Part shown: piece after piece, positions 4,101-47,800 of the stretch
Numbering within the stretch: the stretch's first letter is position 1
Layout: each line of letters opens with the position of its first letter
From: Cyanophora paradoxa CCMP329
Taxonomy: Eukaryota; Plantae; Glaucophyta
Assembly (NCBI GenBank): GCA_004431415.1
Contig: QPMI01000049.1
Coordinates: 62,001 to 126,000 of the forward strand
Direction of reading: 5' to 3'
DNA length: 64,000 nucleotides
The notes under the pieces: generated by a model
What the model was told of the DNA's origin: nothing
What the model saw: the letters and a program-made list of their open reading frames with translations, nothing else
The model's database searches: none
Position numbers and translations under genes: made by a program

Positions 4101-5788
4101 TGAGCCCCTGCGCCTCGAGCTCTCAGAGTCCGCCGTGTCCGGATCCAGCCTGGCAGCGAGCCGTGTCGACGTCCGCCGTGCCGCCGCCCGCCCGCCGCCC
4201 GCGCGCGGCCGCCAGAGGAAAGAGGGACCCACGAGGCGGGCTGGAATTAGAGGGGTATCACTGAGTCAGAGGGGGCGGCCTGGCTAACCGGCCACGGCCG
4301 CGGGCGCTTGGGTAGGGGCGGGGTGGGTGGCGAAGGCGGGGGCCTCCTACCCTCCTCGGGCCTCGCGAGTGAGACTGCGGGCCTCCTCGTCATCGCCGAC
4401 GGGGATTGCGCATCAAGGTACCGATGCACGCACCGGGTATCATAGTATGGCTCGGGGTGGCTTCAACTGCGGTTCTGTGATTCTGTGAGTACCCTAGTAC
4501 GTCTGCGCTTACAAGCGACGACGTACTCCCAGCTGATGTTCTGCTGATGTCCCACTGAGCGGCTGGGCCGAGGCGCGCAGCTCGAGCTTCAATGATGCGA
4601 CGGATGTGCCGGGCTGTTTATAAGTGTCGGGCCGGGAGAGAGAGAGAGAGCAAGTAAAAGACACAGGGTCGGGCCGGGAGCGAAGTACGCAGGCTCGCAG
4701 CCGGCCAGGGGGTACAACGTCTTCGCACTTGGGACTCGCGCGTTGCCATTTGTACCTTCGGCCGCGTTGCCTACTTATACAACCTCGCGAGACGGGTTTT
4801 CTATCCTTGCGCTCGGGCAAACAGTTCACAATGAGGGCAACCGAGTGGCTGTAATTGCTAGTTGAAAACTAAACCAATTCCCGTGAGAACGGCCCACGTG
4901 GCCGGACTCCAATTTATGCGAGGTCAATTAGACCTTTCCAACCCCATTTTGATACTGAAACAAATGAAAATAAACAGCTACCCCGGACCCGTGAGATCTA
5001 GAGTCGGGATATATCGATTCGCAATATTAATTCAAGCTCGAGAGTCGGGATCATATCATCTCGGATGCTCACGATTCACGACTCTGAACATATGCATGGC
5101 CCTCCCCCCCCAAGCAACAATGCCAGCAGATTGATTGATACGGCTTTGTCGACCCTCAGAATGCACTGTACAAGCATGCTACATTTTTAATAGTACTCGA
5201 GCTCGTCATCGTACTCCTCCTCATCCCATTGAGCAGCATCTGGCCACGTGCACTGCGGCTGCTGTGTATGTGTCAAACCGGTACCTGCACTAGTACTGCG
5301 GCGCCCGGCAGCTGGGTGCTGCATATGCATCGATATCTGCCAGCTGCAGGCTGTAGCGCTTGCAACATTCCGGAGGTTATCATAATTCAATGATTATAAT
5401 TAGCTTCTAGCTGCATCATACACTAGGGGGGCCCCCCCCAGTTCCAATGGCTCGGAATCACATAGTCTTACGGTATTGGAACAACGAACTTCCCAAATTC
5501 TCCATACTGGAAACATCGTAACTCTGGGAACTAATGATCAAGTTGCACTGAAAGTTTTGTAGCCCATGGAGATCCCAAGTCAGGAGTCCCGAGAGAAATG
5601 GCAATTGTTCAGATAGCAATAGCAATTGTTCCGACGACAAAGAGAAGAGTTCCCAGAGAAGCTATAAATAGCAGGCTCGCGCAGCCGGGCGCCCGCGCCC
5701 CCGCCCCGTGCACCCTGCCCTGCAGCGCCGGGGGTTGCCATGCATGAATACTGCAATTGCAACACAGCGCCGCCCTAGCGGCCGCACA

Positions 5789-17123: not shown

Positions 17124-17353
17124 CCAAGCGGGGCCCTTGCGACAATGCTGAGAGACTTCTTTGCTCTCGGTGGGCTCAAAAGAATGTCGCGGCCTGGTCG
17201 TAGAGCGGCTCGTGACGCCGCTCGTAACGCAGCTCGTTGAAGACGGGGGTACAGCTCGGGCAAAGCAGTTCAAAGCGGGGGGACACAGCTCGACGGCGAC
17301 GACGCCCTCAGCTGCGAGCCTCGCATCTGGAGACCGCGCTGTGAGCGGCAGCA

Positions 17354-20300
17354 ATGCCGACCTGCGCGGGATGCGAGGATGCCGAGGCGGCGGTGCGCTC
17401 CGAGCGGGCTTCCGGCGCGGATCTCTCTTGACAATCGTTCCCGCACAGGTGCAATGCTTGCAGTGCGAACAAGCATTCTGCGATGACTGCAACACGGTCA
17501 CGCACCGCGGCGCCAAGAAGGCGGCCCACACCCGTGTCCCGCTCGTGAAGCAGAGTGCGTGCGACGTGGATGCTTCAGCTTCGCAGTCTCATCGCCCCTA
17601 GAGCGCCGCTCGCCGTCGCTGCTGGGATGATTGACCTTGCCGCGCAGCGGTGATCTGCGACTCCTGTGAGGAGGCTCCGGCGACGCTGGAGTGTTCCGAA
17701 TGCAGCAAGCGCTTCTGTGAAGTCTGCGATGTGGCGCTGCATCGTTCGGCGAAGAAGTCCAGCCACTCCCGGCATCCGCTTGGGCCATCAAGTGCGCAAC
17801 CGCCCGCTGAGCGCTCCCTGCGCTGAATAGGCGCGATGCAGAACCGGCAGCGCTATCGATCCCCGCATCGCGGCTGCACGAAGGCCCCTTGTCGCCAGGC
17901 GCGCCCCCCGCTGCACGCGAATCGGTTCTCCCGCCAACACCGCCTGCAGCGTCAGATGCAGGCCGCTCCGTCGTGTCCTCATACTCTGGGGCTCCGCCTT
18001 CAAAGCATCACGGCGAGGACGCGCTCCATTCTGTCCCCGCTCGATCGGGCAGCATCGCCGCCCGCCATGCCTCACCGCCTCGCTCGGTCCGCTCCTCGCG
18101 CTCCATCCCGCAGGAGGTGCGAGGCGGCGCACTCCACTGCGCCGCACGGCGCTGACGCGCCCTCGAAGGACGACGAACCGCTCGACGAACCTCTGCCCCG
18201 GCCGCGCGCGGTGCCGCACATCGGAAGCCACGGGCCCGACGGCGTGCTCGCGTCGATCCCGGGCCTGTACGAGCTCATGTCGGTCAAGTTTGATGCTCAG
18301 GATTCGTCCTTGGGTGCGTTGGGCATGCCCGCCGCGGCGGCGCGGCTTACCGGCCGCCCCACGCGCAGTGGAGAAGGTCATCGTGACCAAGAGCGAGGTT
18401 CGGGACCAAAAATCGCGCGCAGGCCGCCGCGGCGCGTAATCGGGCGCAGGTCTACCGCCTCTGCAACGACTTCGCGCCTGGGAGCAGCCGCGAGCGGGAC
18501 GCCATCGTATCTTTCCCGACGCTGAACGAGGCCGCCGTGTTTCCCGTGCGTCCCACTGCCTGACGCCGTCGTGCAAGCCCTCTCAACCAACGCCGCCGCG
18601 CAGGTCGGGCTGTACGGGAACCGCGGCCTCATCCTGGAGTACCTCGCGCGCCACGCCAACTTTCCGCTCGACGGGTCCGCCTCCTGCCGCCGGCCGCCCC
18701 GCCCCCGCGGCGCGCGCCTCACGCCCCGTCCTCCGCAGCCGCCGCATTCTGATGGACGACCCGACGCGCCTGAACCCCGTGCGTGCGGGCCCCTGGCCCC
18801 CCCCCGCGCCCGCCGGCCGGCCTAGGCCTCTGACCGGCGGCCAGGGCCTCTACGTCTGGGTCGGCGAGCGCGAGTCCCCGCACGTCTTCTACTGGCAGGC
18901 GAGCCGCCCCGTCTCCGCCCGATCCCCGCTTGCGCGCGGCTCGAGCGCCGTCCGCGCAGGCGCCGAACGGCTTCCGCGACGTGAACCGCAAGAACGTGAC
19001 CTGCAATTTCATCCGGTGGGCCGCCTCCCCCGCCCCCCGCGTCCCGCCCTTCCTGAGCCGCCGCCGAAGGTACATGACCGAGCTCTGCGACCACACCGTA
19101 TGCCTCCTGGATTCCATGGAGGTGCCCTCGGCCCCTCTGCACTCGCCCCCGCCTCTGCAGAGCGCCCCGCAGGTGGACGGCGTCGAGCTGGGCTCGCGCC
19201 GCGAGCGCACCATCGAAGAGCGCGAGATCTTCGGCTCCGTCGCATTCCAACTCCAGGCGAGCCCGCCCGGGCTTCGCGCTCGGACTCCGCCTCCGCCTGC
19301 TCTCTAACCGCCGGCCCCGCAGACCGACGACGACGTGATCCTGTACCCCGGCTTCCAGCTGCCCCTGCCCCTGGCCCTCTTCGCAGACATCCAGCCCGTT
19401 GTGCGTTGCTCTTAGGCCCCGGACCGGCCCTCGGGCCTCACCGGGCGGCCGCAGGACGTGGATGAGGCGTTCGTCCGCTTCGCGCCGGGCCTCACCCGCC
19501 GCGCCATCCACACGCTGGGGACCGTCCCCGCCGCCCGCCAGTACAATCAGCGAGCCCAGCTCAAGCTCTCTTCCGTCCAGGCGCGCCCCGCTTCAAATTC
19601 GCCGCGTAGGCCGACGCTCGGTCGTTCTGATCCGCGCCGGTCTCTTCGCAACAGTTCTCGGACTGGGCGGAGAAGATCCTGGCGACCAAGAACGTCGAGT
19701 TCGAGCCGTCCGTCTCCTCAGACGACATCATCCTCTTCATCCAGTGCGGCCCGCGTCGAAAGCGACCAAAGGCGAGCGAGCGCTCGAGCGTGACGGGCGT
19801 GGGGCGGCAGGTACGCGGAGCCGGGCCTGTACGCGGAGTGGGACGACCTGCAGAAGAACCTCGCCCTCGAGCACGCCGAGGTCCGCGCCGGAATCCGCGC
19901 CGGAATCTACGCTCTCGGTCTCCGTGACGCGTCCTCGGTCGCCGTGACAGGTCCAGCGCCAGCTGGACGGCGGGCAGCTCGCGCAGCAGGTCAGCTCGCG
20001 CCGCGCCGCGCCGCCTCTGCCCGCTCTGATCTCGCGTCCAGCTCGGCTTCGAGCTCGAGGCCGACGTCCGCCGCGTCCGCAACGCGATGGCGGAGCACCT
20101 CCGCCGCGAGTTCCCGTGCGCGGCCGGCGCCCCGCCCCCCTCTCGACTTTAAAATTGCCTGGAAGATTTCCAGCCCGAGAAGCCTCTCTTGCCAGCTCTT
20201 AAGGCTTTGGCTAAGCCGAGGGCCTCTGCGCCGCCCTACGGCCTCTCCACCCCCCCACCCCCGGTCCGACCGCCCGCGCAGGGAGGAGGAGAAGCTGGTG

Positions 20301-23300
20301 GAGAAGACCGTCGACGAGGAGGGCGTCACCGAGGAGCAGCAGCGCGCCGACTACGGTGCGGCGCCACTCGAATTCATCCTCCTATCCCTCTCTTCTAAAC
20401 ATCAAACTCGCTCTCTCTTTCCGCCTCTCTCTTACGGAGCTCCGCCGGCAGAGTACTTCAAGGACAAGCTGGACTTCGCGGCGTGCTCGCCCAAGCGGGA
20501 CATGGACGAGTGCCTCCTTCGCTACCGCATCGGCCTCTTCATCTGGCTCGAGAAGCGTGTCCCCGGCACGCTCTCACCGGAGGACATCAACGAGGGCAAC
20601 GTCTTCATCGAGAAGGTCCCCATCCGACTCCCGTGCGCGCCATCGAATCCTTTCCGACGCTCGACGCGCCCGCAGGTCATGACGAAGAACAGCCTCAAGT
20701 ACTGGTTCACCCAGTTCTGCAGGCGCGTCCCTTGCCTCATTTTCTTCATTCTCGCTCCTCGGCGGGCCCCTGACGAGGCGGCGCGCGCGCAGCGACGAGC
20801 CGTCGCCGGCGACGGGCCGCCCGAGCGCCGTCGCGGGGGCCCTCGCGGCGCGGGGCAAGCGCCTCTCGCGGGAGGCGCTCGTCGCCGAGGTCGAGAAGCC
20901 GGCGATGACCAAGGCGAGTTCTCAGTCGAGCTAGGGCCCCGCTTCCAGCGGGGCGCACCCGAGCGGGCCCTGACGCGCGGCGCGCAGAAGCACCCGATGA
21001 CGGGGCGGAACGCGTCGGTGCGGCAGCGCTGGCTGGACAAGTACAAGCGCGAGCGCGTCCGCGCCATGGACCTCGCTGACGAGCAGGCCCGCAAGGTCCG
21101 CCCAGCTTGTACCCCCCTCCCCGTCCGCTCTCCCTCCCTCCCCCCGCTCAGCGCGGGCGCGCAGGGCGTGCTGGAGCCCCTGGAGGAGCGCATCCGGCGG
21201 CGGACGCAGCAGCTCCGCGGGCAGTACGGCGACCGGGCGCAGAAGCTCCGCTCCGAGTTCATCGCCAACGTCAAGCGCCGCCTCTCCCTCGTCCAGGTGC
21301 GGGCCCCGCGCGCGCCCGGCGCCCACGAGACGAGACGCCCGCGCCTGACTCGGTCTCACCCCGCCCGCCGGCCCGCCCGCAGGACGCGCGGTTCACGGTG
21401 AAGATCTACTCGTGCACGCTGGCGGCGAACGCGCCCCGGGCGGAGGGCCAGCGCGGCCCCGACTCGACGCCGGAGCCGGCGGCGCCGCAGTCGCAGCAGG
21501 TGGCCGTGACCTTCGCGGAGGAGTACATGTGCGAGGGGCGCGTCGCCCGCCGCTTCCGCCTGCTCGACGTCCTCAAGGAGGACATCCAGAAGCTCGAGGC
21601 GCGCCCGGGCGTCTAGTTCCCGTGTTGTACCCCCCTCGGAACCCGGCTTACCTTCCGGGGGGCAGGCGAGCCCGACGAAGCCGATCGCGCCGCACCTCTC
21701 GGACGTGCGCGGCTCGATCGAGCTCAACCCCGCCACCCAGGAGCTCAAGCGCGTACCCCCGTGGTCCCTTGGGCTTCTCCCCCCCTCTCACCCCTCTCTC
21801 GCAGGGCTGCCTTTATGCTGAAGAACAACCGGGCGCTTGTCTTCATTCAGAGCGCGGCGGAGGGCCAGACCGCCATGTGCATCGAGTCCCTGGGCTCCCG
21901 CGACCCCTGGGGCCTCTCCCCCCTCAAGGCCAGCAGCGCCCTTCCATCGCCCCCTCCTCCCCACCGCCCCCTGAGCGCGGCCGCAGGTGATGAAGAAGCC
22001 GATCGACCTGCTCGCCTTCGACGAGTCCACGCGTCTCCTCGCCCTCTACGACGCCTCCCGCGCCAGGGTGCGCCCGTAGCCCGTAGAGATCGCGGACGCC
22101 GCCGCCCCTCTGCTCCCTTGTTCTTCCTCTCCTTCTTCTTCGAGCCTCCGAGCGAGCGCCCGCTCAGGTGGACGTGTACAAGTTCGACGACGCGTACAAC
22201 CGCCTGGAGAAGACCAGCGACGAGGTCCGCGCGCCGCGCTCGGGCTCGCGCTGCGGCCCGCCGAGCGCGAAGGCCCGGCCCGCAGGTGCACCTGGACATC
22301 TACGCCGGCGAGTCGCGCCTCCGCGACATGTTCCTCGTCGCTGGCCAGGTCCGCCCGCCCCTTCCCTGCCCTCCCCGCCCGCCCGCCCGGTCGCCTCCGT
22401 TTCTCACGCGCCCGCAGTCGCGCATCGTCTTCGTGGACGCCGCGCACCGCTGCCGCCTCTACGACATCGCCACGCGCTCCATGAAGGCGTGTACCCCCCT
22501 CTGATCCCCTTCAGCTTCACTCGGCTGAGAGCGGGGCCGGCGCAGCCGCGCACGATCGACGTGGGGGAGCCGTACGACCGGTCGCTCATCTCCCCGGACG
22601 GGTCCTGCCTCTTCCTCTTTTTCGCGCAGTACCCCGGCGCCTCCCCGTCCCACCCGCACGTCAACTCGCGCCTCCGCCTCCCGGAGACGTGCGCCGTACC
22701 CCGCCCAGCACGCCCGGCCGGATCTCGGGCTGAAGGGGGCGGCAGGGAGGGGAGCGGGACGCCGGCGGGCTGGTCCTCGCGCTCGGTCAGCTCGGAGGTC
22801 GAGGGCTCCAGCGTCCCGGCGACCGTCGTCGGGGCCGCCGCCCTCGGCGTGGGCCCCTCCTCCTCGGGCTCCTTCCGCGGCGGCGCCTCCGAGTTCGGAG
22901 CCGAGGGGCCCCGCGGCGGCATCGAGGCCCGCATCTACCTCCTCTCCACCATGAAGGCCCGCCCCCCCCCCCCCCCCCCCCCCCTCCCTTCTCCTGCCCT
23001 GCCCTGATTGACGCGCGGGGGCAGGAGCTGAAGCGCCTGAAGCTCCCCGACACCTTCGTCCCGGAGCTGGCTCCGACCCTCGAGGCGCGCCCCGCCCCGC
23101 CTCGCCCCGCCCCGCGCCCCGCCCTTCTCACACTGCCGCCTGCGAACGCGCAGTTCGTCTCGTTCGGGCCGCAGATGAACCTCGTCGCTGTCGACGTCCG
23201 CAACCGCGAGATCGTCTCCCAGGCGCGCAGCCCCGCCCGCGCCCGCTCCGGCGCCTGCTCACGCCCGCCGCGTCCCCCTCAGATCGTCTCCATCACCACC

Positions 23301-26300
23301 CAGCAGAACGTCTGGTGCGAACGGGCTAAGGCTTTCTCCTTCTATCGATTTCCTGAGCCACCCCGCCCGCAGCAAAGTCCTCACGGAGACGAAGGACGAC
23401 ACTCCGGAGTCCCTCGCCGCGGAGAAGGCCCGCTCCCGCTCTCCGCTCCCGTTCCCGCGCCCCCCTCGCTCATCTTCACCGGCGCAGGTGCCCTCGACGC
23501 CGGGCGGCGGCGGCGAGACCACCGACATCGTGGCCCCTGGCGCCTACCTCGACTACCTGTACCGTGCGCCTTCCCTCCCCGCCCGCTCTTCATCGCTTCA
23601 GACAGTAGAATCTCGAGACCCTCCGTCCCTGCCTCCAACGCGAGCGAGTCTTGAGCCCCGCCCCGCCCCGCGCCGCCGCAGACGTCTTCGACAAGTTCTG
23701 CATCCGGAGTCTCCTGCAGGAGGAGCGGCGGCCCTTCAGCCTGCACGTCCTCTTGGACGTCCAGCCGGCGGCCTTCGCGCGGCGGCAGCTGCGCCGCCTC
23801 GCCGCCGACTACACCCGCGACATGATGCAGCGGCTCCAGGAGGAGACCCGCAAGAGCGTCGACGACCTCAGGATGACCACCAACGGCGCGCCCCCTCGCC
23901 TCGCCTCCCCGCGCCCTTCTTGTTCAAGCTCTGACGCGTCTGCCGCAGTGTGGACCTTCTGCGACTTCTCGCCGCGCGACTTCCGCTGGCCCCTGCCGCG
24001 CCGCCTCGGCGACTGGATCCGCGATGCGATCTGCCTCGTGCCCATCCAGGTGCCCTCGACCCCCGTCGCCCCCCGCCCCTCCTCTTCTTCCCCATCTGAC
24101 GCGCCGCAGATCGCGCGGGCGGAGGGCAACTCGTTCAAGCCGCTCTGCGATGGCCTCCAGACGGCCGTCGACTTCGCGCGGCAGGACGTCCTCGCCGTCG
24201 CCGCCTCCATCCGCTTCGGCCTGTGCGGCGCCCTTCCGCCCTTCTTCTTCTGGCTCGATTCTCTCTCTCGCTAATCGCGTGGCTCGCTGGCCAGGTACGA
24301 GCCGGTGCTGGAGTCGTGCAGCATGCCCATCCGCGTGGTCAGCAGCATGGGCAAGCAGAGCACGGGTGCGCGAACCATTCTCCTCCTCCTCCGCCTCTTC
24401 TTCCCAGCCGACGCGCCCCTCCCTCCAGGCAAGTCGTACCTCCTGAACCACCTGACGGGCTCCCTCTTCGACATCTCCGGCGGGCGCTGCACGGACGGCG
24501 TCTGGCTCACCTGCCGCCCCGGCAAGGACTGCATGTGCGCCCTGCCCTGGACTCGTGGAAGTTATCTAACCCCCGCCTGACTCGAACCATCGTCTCCCAG
24601 GTACGTCGTGCTGGACTTCGAGGGTCTGGGCTCCTTCGAGCGCTCGGAGCAGGAGGACATGCTCCTCTCTGTCTTCAACGCCGCCATCAGGTCCGAGCCT
24701 TCCTTCGAAGATTCAGTATTTGAGATGTCGCTGTGGCTGTTGCTGACGCCCCCCGTAGTAACCTCACGCTCTACAAGACGGACTTCCGCATCGACAAGGA
24801 CACGGCGGCGACCTTCGCGCGCTTCCAGTCCGGCGTCTCCCTCATCAAGGGCGACGACAAGCTCTTCACCGGCCGCTTCTACATCGTCGTCAAGGTCCGC
24901 TACGCGCGCCAGCCTTCTCCGTTGAATTTATCTGATGCGTTCTGTTAGGACGTGGACGCTCGGGACGTGCGGGACCTCCAGGCGGAGTTCCTCCAGAAGA
25001 TCACGCACATCTGCAAGGCGAACGACCAGGAGAACTTCATCTCCAAGTGTGTTATTTTGTGCTTATTTCTGAGAGTTCTCCGCTGCGCTTCTGATTTCCT
25101 ATTCTTCCTTCAGGATGTACCGCGGGCAGTTCGCCATGTCGACCTTCCCGCCACTCGGGCGCCGCGAGTTCTGTGCGCCGCGCCGCGCGAGTCGACTTCG
25201 CTTTTCGCCGGCGCTCACTCCCCGCAGACGAGCACATGCGGAAGGTGCACGGGGCGCTGATCAAGCAGGCGCCGGCGTTCGAGTCGGGCCGCACCTACAA
25301 GGCGGCGCTGCAGCTCCTCATGGCCAAGATCGGTATGAAGGACTGGACGCCGCTGGACCGCTCGCAGATCGCCGTCCGCGTCGGCCGCCTCCGCCGCCTC
25401 CTCGACGCCGCCGTCTCCACCGGCTCCGTCGCCGAGGCCGAGGCGGGCGCCGAGGGCGCCGCCTCCGTGCCCGCCCCCGTCCCCCGCGGCACTGCCGTCG
25501 CGGACGCCGACCGCTTCCAGGCGCGGCAGACCCGTTTCCCGCCGTGCCTCTGTCCGCCCTCCTTATATGTGCCGCGCAGTGCTTCGACTCGGGCGCGTTC
25601 ATCGACGACGGCGCCCTCGCACTGGTCCGCCCGCCCTGCCCCCGCCGGCTGGCTCTGCTGCGCCCGCGGCTCACGGGGCGCGCAGGAGGAGGAGGGCGTC
25701 GCGCCGGCGCCGTCGGCCCCGCTGCCGGACACGGGCCTCGTGCTGAAGCGGGACGAGGCGTCTGTCGTGGAGCTGATGGCGCCCCTGCGCCGCTACTTCG
25801 AGGAGAACGTCGAGCGGCGCGGGCACTCCAACTTCGGCGACTGGCACTCCCGCTTCCAGACCTTCCTCGGTGCCCTTGCTCCTCCTCCTCTTCCGTCCAC
25901 CGACCTCTTCCCTACTCACTCGCCTTCAGCGGCGGTGGTGGCGCGGCGGCGCGTGCGCGTGCTGGCGTGGATCGAGGCGAACGTGACCGCCTTCTCGACG
26001 GACGGCGACGTCCAGCTGCTCAAGCACGAGGCGAGCACGGCGCTCGTCGAGCTCGCGCGCATGTGGACCCTCTGCGGCATCAAGTGCGAGCGCTGCTACT
26101 ACCTCTGCACCCTCCCTAAGGTGCCGCCGCATCTCCCGCCAGCGAGCCCCCGGCCGCCTCTCACGCCCGTGCAGTACCACGCGGCGGACCACTCGTGCCT
26201 GGGGACGCACAAGTGCGAGGCGCTCTGCTCGTACTGCGCCCAGGACCGCGAGACGCAGGAGGCCGCCGACCGCGACGACGAGGTGCGGGCGGCCCGCTGC

Positions 26301-29291
26301 CCCGCTGCCCCGCCCCGCCCCTGCGGCCGCCTCCGAGCCGGGCGGCGCAGCACGCCGAGGACGCCGAGGCCGGCGATGGCGACCGGCACCACCACCTCCC
26401 GTGCGCCCGCCGCGTAGCCCGCCTCCGCGCGCCCCGCGACCCCTCGCGCAGGCAGGTGCGGTGTGGGGACCTGGCGGGTCACGCCGGCCACCACGACTGC
26501 CGCGTCGGTGCGGCCGGGCGGCCCCGCGGGAGGAGGGGCGCCCCAACTGACGGCCCCGGCAGGGATGCACACGTGCGGGGAGAAGTGCCACCTGGCGCAC
26601 CTCAACAGCTGCAACCGCGTCTGCGTCGGGCGCCCCGGGCACGACGGCCCGCACGTCTGCAACGCCGCCAAGCACCTCTGCGGGAGCGCCTGCTCGCTGC
26701 CGGGCTGCACGCACCCCTGCGTCATGCCCTTCGAGGTGCCCCACCAGCGCCACCAGTGCCACGAGAGCAAGTGCCCGCACCGCTGCCCCATGCCCGGCTG
26801 CAACAACGTCTGCGCCTCCGACGACCACTTCCACGGTCCGCTCCCCCCTCGACGTTCTCCCGCCACTCTTTTCTGATCGGGGGCCGCGCAGGGGCGGACT
26901 CGGCGAGGAACGTGGTGCACCTGTGCTCGCAGGCGCACCCGTGCGCGGACCTGTGCCAGCACCCGGGCGTCTGCGAGATCATGAGCCAGCTCGTCCGCGA
27001 GCGCCGCACCTTCCGCGTCCGTCCCCGCCCCGCCCCGCCCCGCGCCTCGCGCCGCGCGCCGCACCGAGTACGCGGGGCACGCAGGGCACGCGGGGCGACT
27101 TCGAGTACGACTGCTACACGGAGCAGAACAGCATCCGGCGGCGCTGCTGCAAGATGATCCCGCCGGGGGCCACCTCGCACGAGGGCGACCACGTCCACAC
27201 CGAGGACCCCCGGTGCGCCGCCCTCGGGCCTCGCGCCCCGGCCTCGGCTTTCGTTTTTAGGTCTCTGACGCGCGCGGCAGGGCGCTGCACTACTGCGACA
27301 CGAAGTGCCCCTCCTGCGGCTACGTGTGCCACCTCCCGTGGGCGCACCAGCAGGCGCTGCACAAGACGGACCACGGCAACATGCGCTACTGCTTCTTCGT
27401 CGCGGAGGACGAGACGATCGACATCGGGAACCGCAAGTACGTGCGCGGCGAGTCCGGCGAGGCCGAGATGTGCGGGCAGGTGCGCGGCTCTCAATCCCTT
27501 CCCCTCGACAAAGCTTCGCTCGCGCGCTCGGAGAGCCGACCGCCACGCGCCCGCGCAGTACTGCCGGACGCTGGGGCGCGGGCACACGCACCTCGTCTAC
27601 TGCCCGTACGCCGCCCGCGAGCAGTGCGTCGCGTCCGTCGCGGACGGCCGCCGCCACGAGACCTGCCGCTACGGGCCCGACGAGGGTGCGCCGCCTCTCC
27701 GCTTTCTCCCCTCGCTCTCTCTCCCGCCCCTCACCCCCCCCGCCAGACCGGCCGAAGGACGAGCTCACGCACGCGGCGTACTGGCGATCCCTGGGCTTCC
27801 AGGATCCCTGCACGGCCGAGGAGCAGGAGGAGTTCGCCCGCTGCCCCTTCGAGTGCGGCGCCGACGAGCACCAGCCGCGGCCGGGCCAGGCCCCCTCCGG
27901 TCCGCCGCCCTCGTAGCCTCGAAGCGCAGCCTCTGAGTCGCCGGCACCGCACTGCAGAGCGCCCGGAGCCATCCTACTGCGCGATGAAGCTGTGGCACGA
28001 CGCGCTGGACCCCAAGCTGCCGCCGCCCGACGGCTGCGGTCCGCGCTGCTTCTTCGTTGTGCGCGCCGGGGCGGCCCGCCTCACGCCCCGCGCCGGGCAG
28101 GCTTCGTCAGTTCGGCCGGCCACCACTTCCTCTGCACGCACACCCTCACGAATGCCTACCACACGTGCGCTGCCCCGTGTTCGCTAGAGGGCGCCCCGCC
28201 GCCGCTCACAGCCGTGGCGCAGGTACTTCGTGGTGGACCGCTCGTCGTCGATGAGCATCATGGACTGCAAGCCGACTATGGGCCTGATCAAGAAGAAGCA
28301 CGACACGCGCCTGGGCGCCGTCTACGAGTCCTGCCACCGGTGCTTGGCTCCCCGTCCTTGTTCTCCGCCGTTCTTCACTCGATTCTTGCGTCCGGCAGGT
28401 ACGTCATGAACCGAAAGGCGCAGGCGGCCGTCGAGGACCGCGTCTCCATGATCGTCTTCAACGAGAAGACGAACGTTCGCCCGCTCTCTTCCTCTTCTAG
28501 TTCGAAGCCCCGGCGCCGCCGCCGACGCGGGCGCCCCGCAGATCGTCTTCGCGAACGAGCCGCTCTCGGAGCAGCTCGTCGAGCGGATGCTCAACTTCGG
28601 TGCGCCGCGGCCCGCGCGCGCGCCGCTGCCTCGCTGCGGCTGCCTTGCCGATGCCCCCGGGCAGGCGCCGTCGGCAACACGAACTTCTCCGCGGGCCTCA
28701 AGCAGGCGGGGGAGCTCCTCGCAAAGTACCGCTCCGGTACCCCCCAAACTCTCATCCCCCCCTTCCGCGGTTTGCGAGCGTCTCCGCAGACAAGCACCGG
28801 CCGCTCTTCATCTTCCTCACGGACGGCACGGACGGCACGGGCCCCGACGTCGTCTCTCCATCCCTCAAGGCGCGCCCCGCCCTGTACCCCCGCGGCCCTC
28901 GTCCGGGCTCGAGCCTGTACCCCGCAGGTCATGGAGGCGCTCCTCCGGCGCGAGTCGGCCTACGAGTGCGCCCGCGCGCCGCTGGATGCTCAGTCGTCCG
29001 CCCGCCTGTCTGACGGCGGCGCCCCCGCAGGCACCGCCTCGTGATGCACACGATCAAATTCGGGTCGGAGACCGAGGGCAACGATGTGCTCGAAGAGCTC
29101 GCCAAGATGACCGGTGCCGCATGCCTCGCCTTCCCACCCCGCCGCCCCGCCCGCACGCACACTGACCGGCCCCCCCTCCAGGCGGCACGTTCTCCGTCTC
29201 CCTGGACGAGGTTGCGCTGCAGGAGACGTTCGAGTCCATTTCCGGCACCCTCCGCGTTCCCCGCGGCGGCCTCATCCGCTCCCGCAAGTGA
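17354..29291 (+). CDS. Giant multi-exon protein: 2x B-box zinc finger, large N-terminal/central region, VLIG/GBP(GB1-RHD3)-type P-loop GTPase, helical region, Cys/His zinc-finger repeats, C-terminal vWA domain
   Basis: ATG 17354 (MPTCAGCEDAEAA|VQCLQCEQAFCDDCNTVTH...H; ICDSCEEAPATLECSECSKRFCEVCDVALH...H); G1 GKQST|GKS, G2 RCTDG, G3 DFEG, G4-like VK|DV (about 24330-24960); Cys/His repeats about 26070-28160; vWA MIDAS DRSSS...NTNF...FLTDG (28223-29291); TGA at 29289-29291. Dozens of short introns; exons almost all C/G at codon position 3. Not every internal junction was traced. Confidence 0.85.
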
Positions 29292-30600: not shown

Positions 30601-31488
30601 ATGGCCGCGTTCGTTTGCACCGTTCCCGCTGTGCGGTCTGGCGCCTCGGCAGTCACCGCCAGCTCCTCCGTCGAGGTCCGCTGCGCCCGAGGTACCTGTT
30701 GAGTCACGGTGCTGACTGTCGCGTACATGGCAGAAGACCGCGATTCTGAGCTCCCGCCGCGAGACCGTCACCAAGAACGGTGAGCGTGATACCGCCAGCC
30801 CAAAAATCTTCGCCGCTTTGCTGCTCACCGGCGGCCTCCCCGCGCGGTTGCTTGCGTAGTGTTCCTGTCCGGCACTCCCGTCCGCCGCACGTTCGTCGCT
30901 GAGGCCCCTCGCGTTCTTCCCTTCATCTCCGCCGCCGCTGAGGGTGCGGATTTGATCCCCGCGCGTCGCGCGCTCGGCTGACCCGCAGAGCAGTGTTCGA
31001 CGTCGAAATCGCCCACAAGGGCAAGACCTACAACCTTAAGGTCCCCGCGGACAAGACCATCCTCGACGCTGGCATTGAGGCTGGGATCGACCTCCCGTCG
31101 TCCTGCCTTGCCGGCGTGTGCACCACTGTACGCAGGCCCCTCCGTTGTTGTTTGATCGCATGCAGCTAATAATGCGCAATGCCAGTGCTCCGCCCGCCGC
31201 ATCTCGGGCGAGATCGATGATACCGACGCCGTCCTGAGCCCGGAGGTCCAGGAGCAGGGCTTCGTGCTTCTGTGCTCTACCTATCCCCGCTCCGCATGCA
31301 AGTTCGAGACTGTGCGAACAACCCCTCGCTCCGTGTAACGCGCTGAGCTCACATTCTGGTGTCGCCTTCGCAGGTCAAGGAGGATGAGGTCTACGACCAG
31401 CAGGTATAGCAGCCCCTATTTCCGTACACGCATCGCCTGACGCGCATTTGCCTTCCCACAGTTCGGCAAGTACGAGTACGGCAAGTGA
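30601..31488 (+). CDS. Nucleus-encoded plastid [2Fe-2S] ferredoxin with C-terminal extension (FdC1 / cyanobacterial Fed3-like) and transit peptide
   Basis: DLPSSCLAGVCTT|CSAR...GFVLLCSTYPRS cluster motif; C-terminus EDEVYDQQ|FGKYEYGK; N-terminus MAAFVCTVPAVRSGASAVTASSS. Confidence 0.9.
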
Positions 31489-31902: not shown

Positions 31903-33766
31903 ATGGCGAGCAAGGAAGCCGTGGCCGATCGCGCCGGCGCCCCAGATCCAACCCGCTGCGCGCTCTTCATCAAGGCCAAGCGCCGCACTTGCGGATTCCC
32001 TCCGGCGCCCGGGTCCACGTACTGCCATGTGCGCACGCACAATCGTGCACAGGCGGAGCCGAGCGCTGCTGACGCTGGCATCAGGCGCATTTACATCTCG
32101 ATCCGAACGCACCGCCGAAGCGCAAGCGCGTACCGTGCCCGGTGGACCCTAAGCACACAGTTTACGAGGATAAGCTGGAAGAGCACGTTCCGCGCTGCCC
32201 CGCCCTCGTTCAGCGGCAAGCCCGCGAAGCCGCGCCTTACTTCAACGCCGGAATCAACGCGGGCGGAGAGGAGACTGTCGAGGCCGCAGAGGATCGTGCG
32301 GAACCGTCTGCTTTCGCGGGCTCTGAAAAGGCCATGCCGTCGCGGAGCCCAGCCTTGTCGGCGTTGAGCCCAGATGCGTTGAAGAGGATCCTCTCGCTCA
32401 TCGACAAGGCATACGAGAAGGAGGTCGGGGAGATTAAGTTGGAGCCTGTAGCTGCAGAGGATGTAGTATTGCAGCCGCCCGTCCCGTCCTCGTTGGCCTC
32501 GCCATCTGGTTCTGGCTCCGAGGTCTCCTTGGGCCGGTCTGTCAAGCATCCACAGCAGCTTGAAGCCATTGTTGAGCACGCTTGGCGTCTGGGACTACTC
32601 TCTAAACCTGCCACGTCAGCATTTGTTGAATTCGGCGCGGGAAAGGGCACCCTTTCTCACAGCCTGAAACAAATGGCGTCAAAGAAGCTCAAGTTTGATG
32701 CTGCAGATCAACAGTCACCTTCAGCACTTCCCATCCACGTGCTTGTAGATCGAAGTTCATTCAGGCACAAGACGGGTTCGATCTCGCACCCTCTCCCTCA
32801 TTTCATGCTTTTCAAGCTCAACGGTTGCCTTTCGCAGACAAGGATCACAATGACGAGGGCTCAGGGTGGCACAGGATTCGTTGTGATATGTGTGTGGGGT
32901 TTTTATTTGCTTTGCAATTTTTTACCCAAAACATTTGTGATCCGGTGTCCTCGCCTTGCCTTAGAGTCGACTTGGACTTGAACTACGTGGAGGTTCTTAA
33001 GGATCGGCCGGATGTTGTTGCTGTTGGAAAGCACTGTTGTGGATGCGCTACAGGTCCATTTCTGTGTTGAGATGCTTTTCTGGCAGACATTCGCTGATGC
33101 CTGCTGTTGGGACAGATTTCTCCCTACGAGGGATCACAGGCGCTGAAAGGCGTGGAGCAGCACATTCAACCCAGACTCACGAGGGCAAGAGGCAGAAGCT
33201 TGATCAAGCAGTCAAAGTGCATGCGTTTGGTGTTGCCATTGCTACGTAAGTGCTTTCAAATACCTGTGGGTGTATCTTTGTGCTGAAGTCGATCCTGCAG
33301 ATGTTGCCACCACGCATGCAACTGGCAGTCCCTGTGTGGTAAGGAGCTATTTTTGAGGAACGGTTTTGAGAGGAGCGACTTCAAAGTCCTCACTGCCATG
33401 AGCTCATGGGCGGTCCGTATCTTTCTCTCTTGAGCTTATGCTGATGTCGACGGCTGAACCCCTGGAACAGACCTGTGGCCTGCGGCCGGACATGGATGCA
33501 GATGCCCCAGGCGGGGGCGCCCTGAATATGACACACGCAGAGAAGGAGCGCTATGGGATGAAGGTACGACCTGGAAATGGACGATGAGCCGCCCAACATT
33601 AATTCCAAACACCCGAATTCCTCTGCAGATAAAGAACCTTATAGATGCTGCTCGCCTTAACTTCCTCAAGGAGTTCGGGTTCGAGGTGACCAAGCTCGTG
33701 CGCTATGTGGAGTCTAGTGTAACTCCAGAGAATGTGCTGCTTCTTGCAATGCGAAAAGCAGTCTGA
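31903..33766 (+). CDS. TRM13: tRNA:m4X 2'-O-methyltransferase
   Basis: CCCH finger CALFIKAKRRTC...YCHV, CHHC finger CPVDPKHTVY...HVPRCP, FVEFGAGKG, KHCCGCATD, IAT|CCHH, VTPENVLL. Confidence 0.92.
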
Positions 33767-44869: not shown

Positions 44870-47800
44870 TCAGCCACTCTTCCGGCTCCGCTTGTTCTTC
44901 ACATTGGCGGTTTCGTAGTAGTGCACCCCAGCTTTCTTTTTGTTGGTAGTCATGCGTTTCTCCTGATTCGAGAATAAAACTTCGAAAATGATGTGTTATA
45001 CCTGGTCCAGCAAGCATTACCTTTTTGCCCGCTCGCTTGCTGTCCTCATCTCCACTCCCATCACCCGTAACGTGCATGGCCTTCTTGCCCTTCTTCGTCT
45101 GCATGCCTGGTTTTGGCGGATGAACAAGCTTGCCCTTTGCTTTCTTCTCAATGGTCTTCTTCGCTGGAATTTCTGTGGAGCCTCGTGCTGCCTTGAGTTT
45201 TTGTGCTGCACCCTTTGATGTTGGCCCCTGTGCCTTCTCCTCATCTAGTGATTGTGAGTGGAAGAAGAGCTCGCATCGCATAAATGGGAGAAACAACGCA
45301 CCTCCTGAGGATGTTGTTTCTTCAACTCCGCTGTGCTCTTCTGCATCAGCCTCTGCTGCCTCGTCTTCATCCGTGACTGAAGAGTCTGCACGCACACAAG
45401 AAAAATCATGATTAGCATTGGCAATCAGGGTCTGACACTTGCGCACCCTCGCCTTCTGCAGTGGGCGCGTCGCTTTTGATGCTGGGTGTTTCTGGGCCTA
45501 TGCACACAAAGTGAGTGGGGTCTCGCTGTCTCGCTTATTCGAAAGACTCGCAAATTACCGTCATCACCACCATCCTCAATTTCTTCAGCTGTAACGTCTT
45601 TTGCGGAGATGTTCTTGAAGACTTCGTCCCAGTCTGGCTCATCTGCTTCAGTCGGTTGAACTTCTGAGGCTCCCGCTTCAGCGTCCTCCTCTGTAAATGC
45701 AGTCTGCACCCGAATCTTCTCGAACTGGAGAAGGAAGTTTTAGCAAGGACAATAGAATCAGCTGGAAAAACAAGCACCCGTTGCTTCAACTGGAACTTTT
45801 CGTTCTGGCTCTCAGTGGCGTCTCCCTCTTCGGCAATCTGAAAAACCAATTTGAGCATATATACCCAGGCACCATCATGGAAGGAGGCTACGGGGCATGA
45901 ACCTCGGACGAGGGTGCGTTCGGATCTGCAGGAGGTGGCACAAAGAATGGTATCTTCCCACGTTGCCAATCGTTCAAAATCATCCTTGCGCTCGTGTTCA
46001 GATCCGGCTCCCCTTTCTGAAACACGAATCTCAGTTAAATTCGGCCACTTCGTCTGTCGTTGGCAAGCAGACCTTCAGTAACCTGCCCGACTTTTTCGAA
46101 AACTGTGTCAAGAAGTCGATGTGATCCGTCCAGTCGGAGATCCCATAGGTTCGCACGATGTACTCCTGAGCAGGAATAAATGCTCTAACAAAAGAGAGTC
46201 CGAGGCAAGAGAGTCTGACCTTCTTGACACGTTTGAGAACCTCCACAATGTGCTCTGTCGCATCTCCAATGTTCTCGACGCGGACGACTCCCTTGAGGAC
46301 TGTGTCGGTCTCCGAGTCCCCAACATTGTAGACTACTCCAGGACAATCGACAAGGAAAATTTTCTTGAAAAGGGTGATGTACTGCCAAACCTGTACAAAG
46401 ACATTCCGCAATGTTTCAACGAACATATGAATTCTGCAAAGATACCTTCGTCTCGCCAGGAATGGGTGCAACATTGCAGACTTTTTTGCCCCGAAGTGTA
46501 TTAATAAGTGAGGACTTGCCCACGTTAGGGTAGCCCACAAATCCGACAGAGATGTTTTTCTTGTCCCGGTGCAGTCGAGAAAATTGGCGCAGAAGGTGGA
46601 TGAGCGAACCCTTGCCGAATGGATTCGTAATAGAAGCATGAAAAGCGAGAGTTGGATACTCCTCCGAGAGGATCTTGACCCAGCGAGACTGCTCAGAAGC
46701 ATAAGGGCGCAAGAAAACAAGAGAATGTCAACACGGCAAATAAATACCGTGACCCATGTAGGCACAAGGTCGCACTTGTTCAAAACAAGAAGAAGGTGCT
46801 TGTGCTGGCCCTTCTTTTTCAAAAAAGACTCCAGGTACTTGGATCGCGTCCCCATTGGATCACGAGCATCCAAGACTTGAACAATTACGTCAGAGCTGTC
46901 AATGACCTGTGGAAAACAAAAGGGATTAATTCGGCAAAAAATTACGAGATGCACTGCTCGCCTTATGAAGCTCGCCGAAGATGCGACGAGACTGGCCTTT
47001 TTCGAATACTGGCTCCTTCATTTGTGGAGTGTAGTCAAGCTCTTGCTTGATGTTGCTGTCCTTCTCGACGTCATACGAGTCTGCATAAAACCAATGAGCG
47101 ACGTGTTCGTCATGTTGGCTGAAAAGTGCACCAGTGCTCGTGTTGGCTTTCGAAGCAAGGGAGTCAAGATCACCCACACTGATCTTCGGCTTCTTCCTCT
47201 TCTGTCCGGGACCAAAAGTATCCGCGAAGCTCTCTACAGAGAGAAGATTCATTCTTGTCGTCTGCTCGATACACAGCGGTAAATCATCTAACTGGGTGCA
47301 TTTGCGACAGAGAAGTCCAGCTGCACCTTAGCAGAGTCCTTTAGGAGCGACAGAGGGAGGGCCTTTTGCTTGAGAACAACTGTGTAAGAGTCGTTCACTT
47401 TGGCTTTCATTTCATCTCGGAACTTTTCAAGCTCCTCTTGCCCTATCACACGGGTATTGCCTGCGGCGAGAATCGTCTGACCCGAGCGACCAAGGAATAG
47501 CGAATAGTTGCCTCACCAAACCAACGACGGTCAGGCGCCACGCGAGCGTGCTTGGGTGCCTCGCGCGACATGAGCTCCCCCTTGACGAGCTTTCCGTCTT
47601 TGTTGCGGATAGGCCTCTGCCTGTACATCTTGAGGCGCTTGACCTGCAGCGCGGTTTCAGCGGGGCTCTTGTCTTCGAAATGATAAACTGCTTACAGTCG
47701 AAGCGCTTCGGAAGCCATCTTTGACTTGATTGGAGCGCCGGGCGTTGTCGGAGCTGCCTTTCACCACCTGCTGCTTCGGAGCCTCCTTCTTCTTCCCCAT
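44870..47800 (-). CDS. NOG2: Nucleolar GTP-binding protein 2 (circularly permuted GTPase)
   Basis: NGP1NT region ([10 protein letters not shown]|NTRVI), [13 protein letters not shown]|[29 protein letters not shown]. Confidence 0.96.

Follow-up and report, generated by a model that had tools for sequence, protein, structure and literature searches.

Coat formation and membrane fusion by large GTPases are exemplified by guanylate-binding proteins (GBPs), GVIN1, atlastins and Sey1. GVIN1 is an interferon-induced GTPase that forms coats, and together with the GBPs it makes up a set of immune coat-forming GTPases (PMC11974893); RNF112, in which a RING is joined to a GBP-like GTPase, shapes endosomes and mitochondria (PMC12012479). 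Here we describe a giant gene of the glaucophyte alga Cyanophora paradoxa CCMP329, located in a 64,000-nucleotide stretch of contig QPMI01000049.1 (positions 62,001 to 126,000, forward strand; the window, in whose coordinates all positions are given), whose product brings together a GBP-like engine, a beta-propeller, a Cys/His cluster with 67 candidate ligands and a von Willebrand factor A (vWA) domain with a metal-ion-dependent adhesion site (MIDAS), a combination without a studied example. The gene belongs to an undescribed, eukaryote-wide branch of GBP-like soluble giant GTPases that has never been studied. We read it, with a probability of roughly 55%, as encoding a nucleotide-driven assembly machine of this family.

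The gene and its transcripts

The locus is one real, expressed gene. An earlier model-generated reading of the letters and their open reading frames (ORFs), here the sequence-only reading, had proposed a single 12-kb plus-strand gene at 17354-29291, broken by dozens of tiny introns and encoding roughly 2,300-2,600 amino acids (aa). This description proved accurate, as exact mapping with refined junctions places 71 introns in the gene and the product has 2,429 aa. It is identical to EukProt entry EP00741_Cyanophora_paradoxa_P015292 (tig00000194_g14761.t1; here P0080); the gene model is thus already public in an existing proteome, and the locus itself had been annotated before. P0080 was recovered by a second search that took the closest full-length relative, P0064, as query. 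When placed on the plus strand of 17354-29291, 2,424 of its 2,429 residues fall in exact 6-mer blocks, the remainder being split codons. Protein searches used P0080, which is identical to the spliced product, and intron borders were set from the codons flanking each junction. This refinement gives 72 exons of 29-293 nt and 71 introns of 50-166 nt (median 61), with GT..AG borders at 54 introns and GC..AG borders at the other 17 (24%), a share that is unusually high relative to most eukaryotes; at four introns, including 21749-21804 and 17899-17949, GC..AG is supported or fitted by RNA joints. The coding sequence (CDS), 2,429 codons plus stop or 7,290 nt, opens with an ATG at 17354 that has an in-frame stop immediately 5' of it and closes with TGA at 29289-29291, in DNA that is GC-rich and eukaryotic. 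The features of the gene, with the evidence for each, are as follows.

17354..29291 (+): whole CDS, 72 exons and TGA stop; exact mapping of P0080, RNA joints
17357..17544 (+): B-box 1, aa 2-45, split by intron 17393-17448; Pfam PF00643/PF22586
17656..17766 (+): B-box 2, aa 52-88; PF00643 32.0 bits and PF22586 32.7 bits on 17635-17823
17767..18222 (+): variable Ala/Pro/Gly/Arg/Ser-rich linker, aa 89-189; 63% A+P+G+R+S, sparsely occupied across the aligned family
18223..19181 (+): family-specific alpha/beta domain, aa 190-355; block-mean predicted local distance difference test (pLDDT) mostly 83-95 in the AlphaFold2 (AF2) model, family alignment
19233..19571 (+): first strands of the beta-propeller, aa 373-445; VIA-align propeller matches spanning about residues 190-967 of the model
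19572..21287 (+): helical insert, aa 446-751; AF2 secondary structure, per-domain identities
21392..23385 (+): main body of the beta-propeller, aa 758-1161; Foldseek, VIA-align
24041..25334 (+): large G domain, aa 1300-1562; Pfam, PDB profile search, fold matches, homodimer prediction
25353..26063 (+): helical region, aa 1569-1745; AF2 model
26064..28153 (+): Cys/His-rich region, aa 1746-2215 (470 aa); family alignment, block-mean pLDDT mostly above 85
28154..29288 (+): vWA domain (PF13519/PF00092), aa 2216-2429; VWA_2 at 28.8 bits in Pfam (cut-off 27), fold

Transcript evidence comes from a comparison, over 17200-23199, of contigs from three RNA-like runs belonging to three studies (X1, X5 and X8) and from one DNA run (X12). 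An 8,358-nt contig of X1 and a 7,453-nt contig of X5, which stem from different studies, both span the first B-box exons up to 22949, so that a single spliced molecule takes in exons 1 to 35. All 15 of their listed joints are model introns, and in both the spliced length of 17449-22949 is 3,263 nt, an exact match to the model. The same joints occur in fragments in X8, and the DNA run keeps the introns, being unspliced across 17200-20806. By arithmetic, each of the two long contigs has room for the whole CDS, with 78-84 nt left as 5' untranslated region (UTR). The same arithmetic leaves about 79 nt after the stop codon in X5 as against about 990 nt in X1, a difference that may be due to a long 3' UTR, to alternative ends or to read-through. 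Finally, P0064 (2,492 aa), which is encoded by an independent 7,684-nt transcript-like contig (L001), is collinear over its aa 10-2467 with positions 17345-28966 of the window.

The G domain and its family

The P-loop is split by an intron, as the sequence-only reading had noticed: its codons lie at 24295-24365, where exon 44 ends, and from 24429 onward, where exon 45 begins behind the intron 24366-24428. Pfam searches of raw exon translations recovered only the B-boxes and one weak URGCP match, the vWA and Cys/His exons being too short, and a PDB sequence search with a single G-domain exon returned noise only. In the spliced protein, G1 (GKQSTGKS, aa 1359-1366, with K1365 at 24431), G2 (T1385 at 24491, in RCTDGVW) and G3 (LDFEG, aa 1403-1407, with DFEG from 24614) are near-invariant among 78 relatives in a MAFFT alignment; these motifs are intact, as had been claimed, and conserved in the family, and the residues of the vWA MIDAS described below are likewise all present. 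The G4 position reads KD (aa 1474-1475, at 24892) in place of the (T/V)RD motif of GBPs, and an alignment with GBP5, GBP1 and GBP2 puts a Ser at the position of the GBP1 arginine finger, R48.

Assignment of the domain to the GB1/RHD3 superfamily, likewise proposed earlier, agrees with all three kinds of comparison. In Pfam, the GBP profile (PF02263) scores 28.1-31.6 bits, above its cut-off of 21.1, over profile positions 15-122 of 264 only. URGCP_GTPase gives the best Pfam E-value for the domain and is matched by 75 of 78 family members (best 8.7e-15), at 32.3-35.8 bits that stay below the cut-off of 55 and cover profile positions 188-263 of 396 only; RHD3_GTPase reaches 26.2-29.2 bits, also below its cut-off (42.4). 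A PDB search with the family profile matched GBP5, GBP2 and GBP1 at E-values of 1.4e-11 (GBP5) to 6e-9 and Sey1p at 5.7e-9, with no sequence match to atlastin; with P0080 alone, GBP5 was matched at 1.8e-9 and Sey1p at 2e-3. The fold matches are effectively tied in VIA-align (Sey1p Z 20.6, GBP2 19.9, GBP1 19.5, atlastin-1 18.9), RNF112 (9jjx) is among the top Foldseek matches (E 2.8e-10), and the G domain and the helical region behind it align jointly to Sey1p and GBP1 over 320 residues. By Pfam scores, motifs and folds, the domain thus reads as a branch of its own within the GBP/Sey1/VLIG group (VLIG, very large inducible GTPase), outside every named family.

The sequence-only reading had argued against a Sey1/RHD3 orthologue for want of a C-terminal membrane hairpin, and we arrive at the same view because RHD3_GTPase stays below its cut-off, no transmembrane segment is seen and GBP5 is matched at about 2e-9 against 2e-3 for Sey1. 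The most hydrophobic Kyte-Doolittle 19-mer scores 1.47 and lies away from the C-terminus, which ends in LIRSRK and carries no CaaX box; Pfam gave no match to the GBP C-terminal domain.

Pairing of the G domains is predicted as well. Two copies of aa 1295-1750, modelled with GTP and Mg, gave a homodimer score of 0.54 against 0.00 for the best control, with at least 91% contact agreement between runs and a partner pLDDT of at least 65; among proteins of known structure, 21 of 30 pairs and none of 23 single chains attain the 0.54 mark. The predicted interface is the P-loop/switch/G4 face (aa 1360-1363, 1380-1383, 1409-1411 and 1474-1487), and the prediction is to be taken as a likeness to known G-domain dimers, not as proof of binding.

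A search with the stop-free stretch 25095-26414 returned 63 relatives, many of them 2,100-2,650 aa long. With the C-terminal half of P0064 as query, at least 135 proteins are found (E at most 0.001), and most of the 120 matches listed have about 2,000-2,700 aa and the same domain set; hidden Markov models of the family's regions match 140-184 proteins. Relatives show collinear homology over their full length, with an identical order of domains. They come from Archaeplastida (the red alga Galdieria and, in the green lineage, Mesostigma, liverworts, a moss, Selaginella, ferns and gymnosperms), fungi (Agaricomycetes, Glomeromycota, Endogone and Basidiobolus), protists (Amoebozoa, a malawimonad, a dinoflagellate and an oomycete) and animals (sponges, an acoel and an amphipod). 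The resemblance to fungal and protist GTPase-vWA proteins, which the sequence-only reading had pointed out, is borne out by actual relatives. In the databases these are called "hypothetical protein" or "VWFA domain-containing protein", and a few were automatically named Sey1 homologue. Flowering plants, vertebrates and ascomycetes are not represented among the matches listed, which is not proof of absence; pattern and tblastn scans found no relative in 185,579 prokaryote genomes or in IMG/VR, and a literature search found no paper on the family.

The constant core consists of the alpha/beta domain, the propeller with its helical insert, the G domain, the helical region, the Cys/His cluster and the MIDAS vWA, and in glaucophytes and some animals two B-boxes precede it. 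The ends vary: B-boxes occur in glaucophytes, sponges and one animal group (in the latter also a RING), and other relatives carry C2 and SAM domains (an amoeba), an AAA+/helicase (Mesostigma), a kinase (one relative) or an exonuclease (Pelomyxa). In a FastTree phylogeny of the C-terminal half, P0064 is the nearest neighbour of P0080 and Galdieria joins this pair next, while land plants and fungi fall into clades of their own; local expansions are found in Cryptomeria (tandem-numbered paralogues), Ceratopteris, Mesostigma and Agaricomycetes. The G domain shows 82% identity among glaucophytes, 66% with Galdieria and 55% with land plants, and in every lineage tested conservation falls from the G domain through the Cys/His region and vWA to the propeller and then the helical insert, the last two being only 10-28% identical between P0080 and Galdieria or land plants.

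The relatives that have both B-boxes and a RING are encoded, probably in invertebrate animals, by single uninterrupted ORFs of 7.5-8 kb (L002 3001-10473, L003 10001-18046, L004 10001-17476), as against 71 introns in Cyanophora; BEL/Pao and RVT_1 retroelements are present on the same contigs. A giant-virus origin of these intronless relatives from ENA was considered and dropped, given flanks with BEL/Pao and RVT_1 and small ORF calls that look spurious.

Other domains and the surrounding window

Both B-boxes of the sequence-only reading are present and exceed the PF00643 cut-off of 24.1 (25.0 and 32.0 bits on raw exon translations); Pfam finds no RING in P0080, and the TRIM order of RING, B-box and coiled coil is absent. 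The alpha/beta domain behind the linker bears the motifs VEK, LCN, GxYG, PGLY, YW and RYxxxLCD and is without a match in Pfam or in a PDB sequence profile search (best E 1.2); aa 190-470 gave no usable match in an ESM Atlas feature search. Beyond what the sequence-only reading had seen lie the pre-existing gene model, the beta-propeller and a long helical insert. An AF2 model of aa 190-1240 built on the family alignment is confident (mean pLDDT 79.1; predicted template-modelling score, pTM, 0.67). In this model the insert, which is the most variable region of the family, splits the propeller and ends in a helix of 69 residues (aa 683-751) that could be a coiled coil; a disordered loop (aa 1024-1084) lies within the propeller body. 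Foldseek matches the propeller to WD40/G-beta proteins and WDR61 at E about 1e-6, and VIA-align matches it to NHL and WD40 folds with Z 13-15.4, the top match (15.4 over 260 residues, to the NHL domain of Brat) being tied with WD40 proteins; no WD40 or NHL Pfam match is found in P0080.

For the C-terminal 1,200 residues the AF2 model, again from the family alignment, is also confident (mean pLDDT 86.8, pTM 0.71). VIA-align of the two models, of 1,000-1,200 residues each, is dominated by propeller, vWA and G domain and is uninformative on the Cys/His and alpha/beta folds. Of the 47 Cys and 43 His in the Cys/His region, 67 are kept in at least 90% of 75 relatives; this number would allow for about 16 zinc sites, and the region is presumed, from sequence and model, to be a multi-zinc module. 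It has no Pfam match at E up to 0.1 and no significant PDB profile match. The NF-X1-type finger (PF01422) suggested by the sequence-only reading is accordingly not supported, and the finger pattern C-x(1-6)-H-x-C-x3-C-[HC]-x(3-4)-[HC]-x(1-10)-C gave no match in its strict form and two in a relaxed form. Within the region, aa 1786-1815 form an acidic, His-rich insertion that holds no family-conserved residue. The vWA domain has a complete MIDAS (DxSxS...T...D) made up of D2224 (28236), S2226, S2228, T2308 (28679) and D2338 (28822), and VIA-align matches it with Z 22.6 to 4fx5 (root-mean-square deviation 2.2 A over 176 residues) and 22.5 to TFIIH p44 (4wfq). PADLOC and NCBIfam searches gave no match.

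Elsewhere in the window, a full-length U4 spliceosomal small nuclear RNA gene lies at 4803-4933 (+; Rfam RF00015, 80.9 bits). Some 1.7 kb past the end of the giant gene, 30993-31169 (+) is an exon with a plant-type 2Fe-2S ferredoxin domain (Fer2 27.8 bits, cut-off 21), followed at 32142-32981 (+) by an ORF piece with a TRM13 methyltransferase match (34.3 bits, cut-off 26); an ORF at 46031-46954 (-) has a weak match to the MMR_HSR1 GTPase, below the Pfam cut-off (19.9 against 21.9 bits).

Proposed mechanism, alternatives and comparison with known systems

In the mechanism that we propose, binding of GTP would let two G domains pair head-to-head at their P-loop/switch face, as in GBPs, atlastins and Sey1, and further self-association would come from the B-boxes and the long helix. 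The variable propeller would bind a target or ligand, and the conserved zinc cluster and MIDAS vWA would grip a protein partner through a metal-acidic contact. By analogy, the cellular role might be a target-triggered coating or scaffolding in surveillance or defence, a proposal that we put forward tentatively; it is attractive because GBPs and GVIN1 act in this way and because of the TRIM-NHL-like N-terminal parts, the local expansions and the shuffling of end domains. A bolder and more doubtful version sees an ancient GTPase of surveillance, which might date back to the last eukaryotic common ancestor, would predate and be independent of interferon systems, and would coat or trap invaders or damaged structures by combining TRIM-like assembly parts (B-box, coiled coil, propeller and, in animals, RING) with a GBP-like engine and a zinc/vWA output. 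Its loss from most model organisms would explain why the family is unstudied.

Several points weigh against the assembly machine and, in particular, against a defence role. Zinc binding and the coiled coil are predictions from sequence and structure models, and the dimer score could stem from the predictor having learnt the solved dimers of GBPs and atlastins. The read comparison covers the 5' half of the gene, with the contigs followed to 22949, beyond which (22950-29291) the model places 37 further introns, and the transcript was assembled in three RNA studies. The sequence-only reading had named a slow-evolving, single-copy orthologue as a result that would speak against its own defence proposal, and part of this picture is what we find: there is a single Cyanophora entry among the matches listed (120 of 135), the tree largely tracks species relationships, and a G domain still 55% identical to that of land plants, or 55-66% across Archaeplastida, behaves like a conserved housekeeping engine.

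The same conservation and species-like tree would fit a basic cell-biological role, and one alternative is a peripheral GTPase that tethers membranes or remodels organelles, similar to Sey1, atlastin or RNF112, and that is recruited through partners bound by its propeller or vWA and not by a hairpin of its own. The best whole-domain fold of the G domain plus helical region is that of Sey1p (Z 20.6), which is tied with GBP1 and close to atlastin, RNF112 stands among the top Foldseek matches (PMC12012479), and one relative has a C2 domain. We nevertheless regard this as unlikely, since P0080 is without a transmembrane segment, amphipathic tail or CaaX box, RHD3_GTPase stays below the Pfam cut-off, and the lack of flowering plants, vertebrates and ascomycetes among the matches listed would be odd for a core membrane machine. 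Another improbable alternative, to which we give the same weight, is a scaffold in ubiquitin/proteostasis or nucleic-acid pathways, with vWA and zinc acting as in TFIIH p44/Ssl1 or Rpn10, the B-boxes (and the RING of animals) as the E3 part and the GTPase as a timer. The vWA fits TFIIH p44 (Z 22.5) and Rpn10 (Z 21.3) no less closely than any other vWA, animal relatives do have a RING, and the set of B-box, coiled coil and propeller echoes TRIM-NHL proteins; on the other hand, vWA Z-scores are tied over dozens of unrelated vWA proteins, and no RING, nucleic-acid-binding or ubiquitin-related domain was found in the Cyanophora protein. That the gene is an annotation artefact, with adjacent genes fused by the predictor or by chimeric RNA contigs, is close to refuted: contigs can be chimeric and the reads were compared over 17200-23199 only, but two studies give the same contig structure with the exact spliced length and contigs that could hold the whole CDS, intronless animal relatives carry the order from B-box to vWA in one ORF, and L001 encodes the full P0064.

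If the assembly machine does serve in defence or quality control, GTPase-based cell-autonomous surveillance would extend to algae, fungi, early land plants and sponges; if it is a housekeeping protein instead, it would still be a conserved cellular machine of an undescribed kind. Members occur in most eukaryotic supergroups, and the family seems, among the matches listed, to be missing from yeast, flowering plants and vertebrates, which is probably why it has no literature. Tractable hosts exist within it, namely Schizophyllum, Ceratopteris, mosses and liverworts.

Among the described systems, GBP5 is the solved structure that P0080 matches best by sequence (E 1.4e-11 for the family profile and 1.8e-9 for P0080 alone). 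GBP1, GBP2 and GBP5 share with it the TGKSY(L/M)N context of the P-loop, the G2 threonine and the LD(T/F)EGL of G3, and the predicted head-to-head dimer resembles theirs. Unlike GBPs, P0080 has a Ser at the arginine finger and neither the GBP C-terminal domain nor a CaaX box, and it is four times longer, with propeller, zinc cluster and vWA added. Sey1p and atlastin are similar in fold (Z 20.6 and 18.9), Sey1 having the profile match over the longest stretch (5.7e-9), yet P0080 differs from Sey1/RHD3 proteins and atlastins in having no transmembrane hairpin, RHD3_GTPase is below cut-off and atlastin is unmatched by sequence. VLIG, GVIN1 and URGCP proteins share the giant size and, through URGCP_GTPase, the best Pfam E-value for the G domain, although that match is partial and below cut-off. 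The published description of GVIN1 has two large G domains and, unlike P0080, neither propeller nor zinc cluster nor vWA (PMC11974893).

RNF112 (ZNF179) resembles P0080 in joining a zinc-finger E3-type module to a GBP-like G domain. It is a membrane-anchored protein of about 630 aa and differs from P0080 in having no propeller, Cys/His cluster or vWA and in being unmatched by sequence. TRIM-NHL proteins such as TRIM2, Brat and Mei-P26 differ in domain order and in their RING, which P0080 lacks, the propeller of P0080 is tied with WD40 folds, and the GTPase-zinc-vWA half has no TRIM counterpart; what they share with it are the B-boxes, the long helix and the beta-propeller, to which the animal relatives add the RING.

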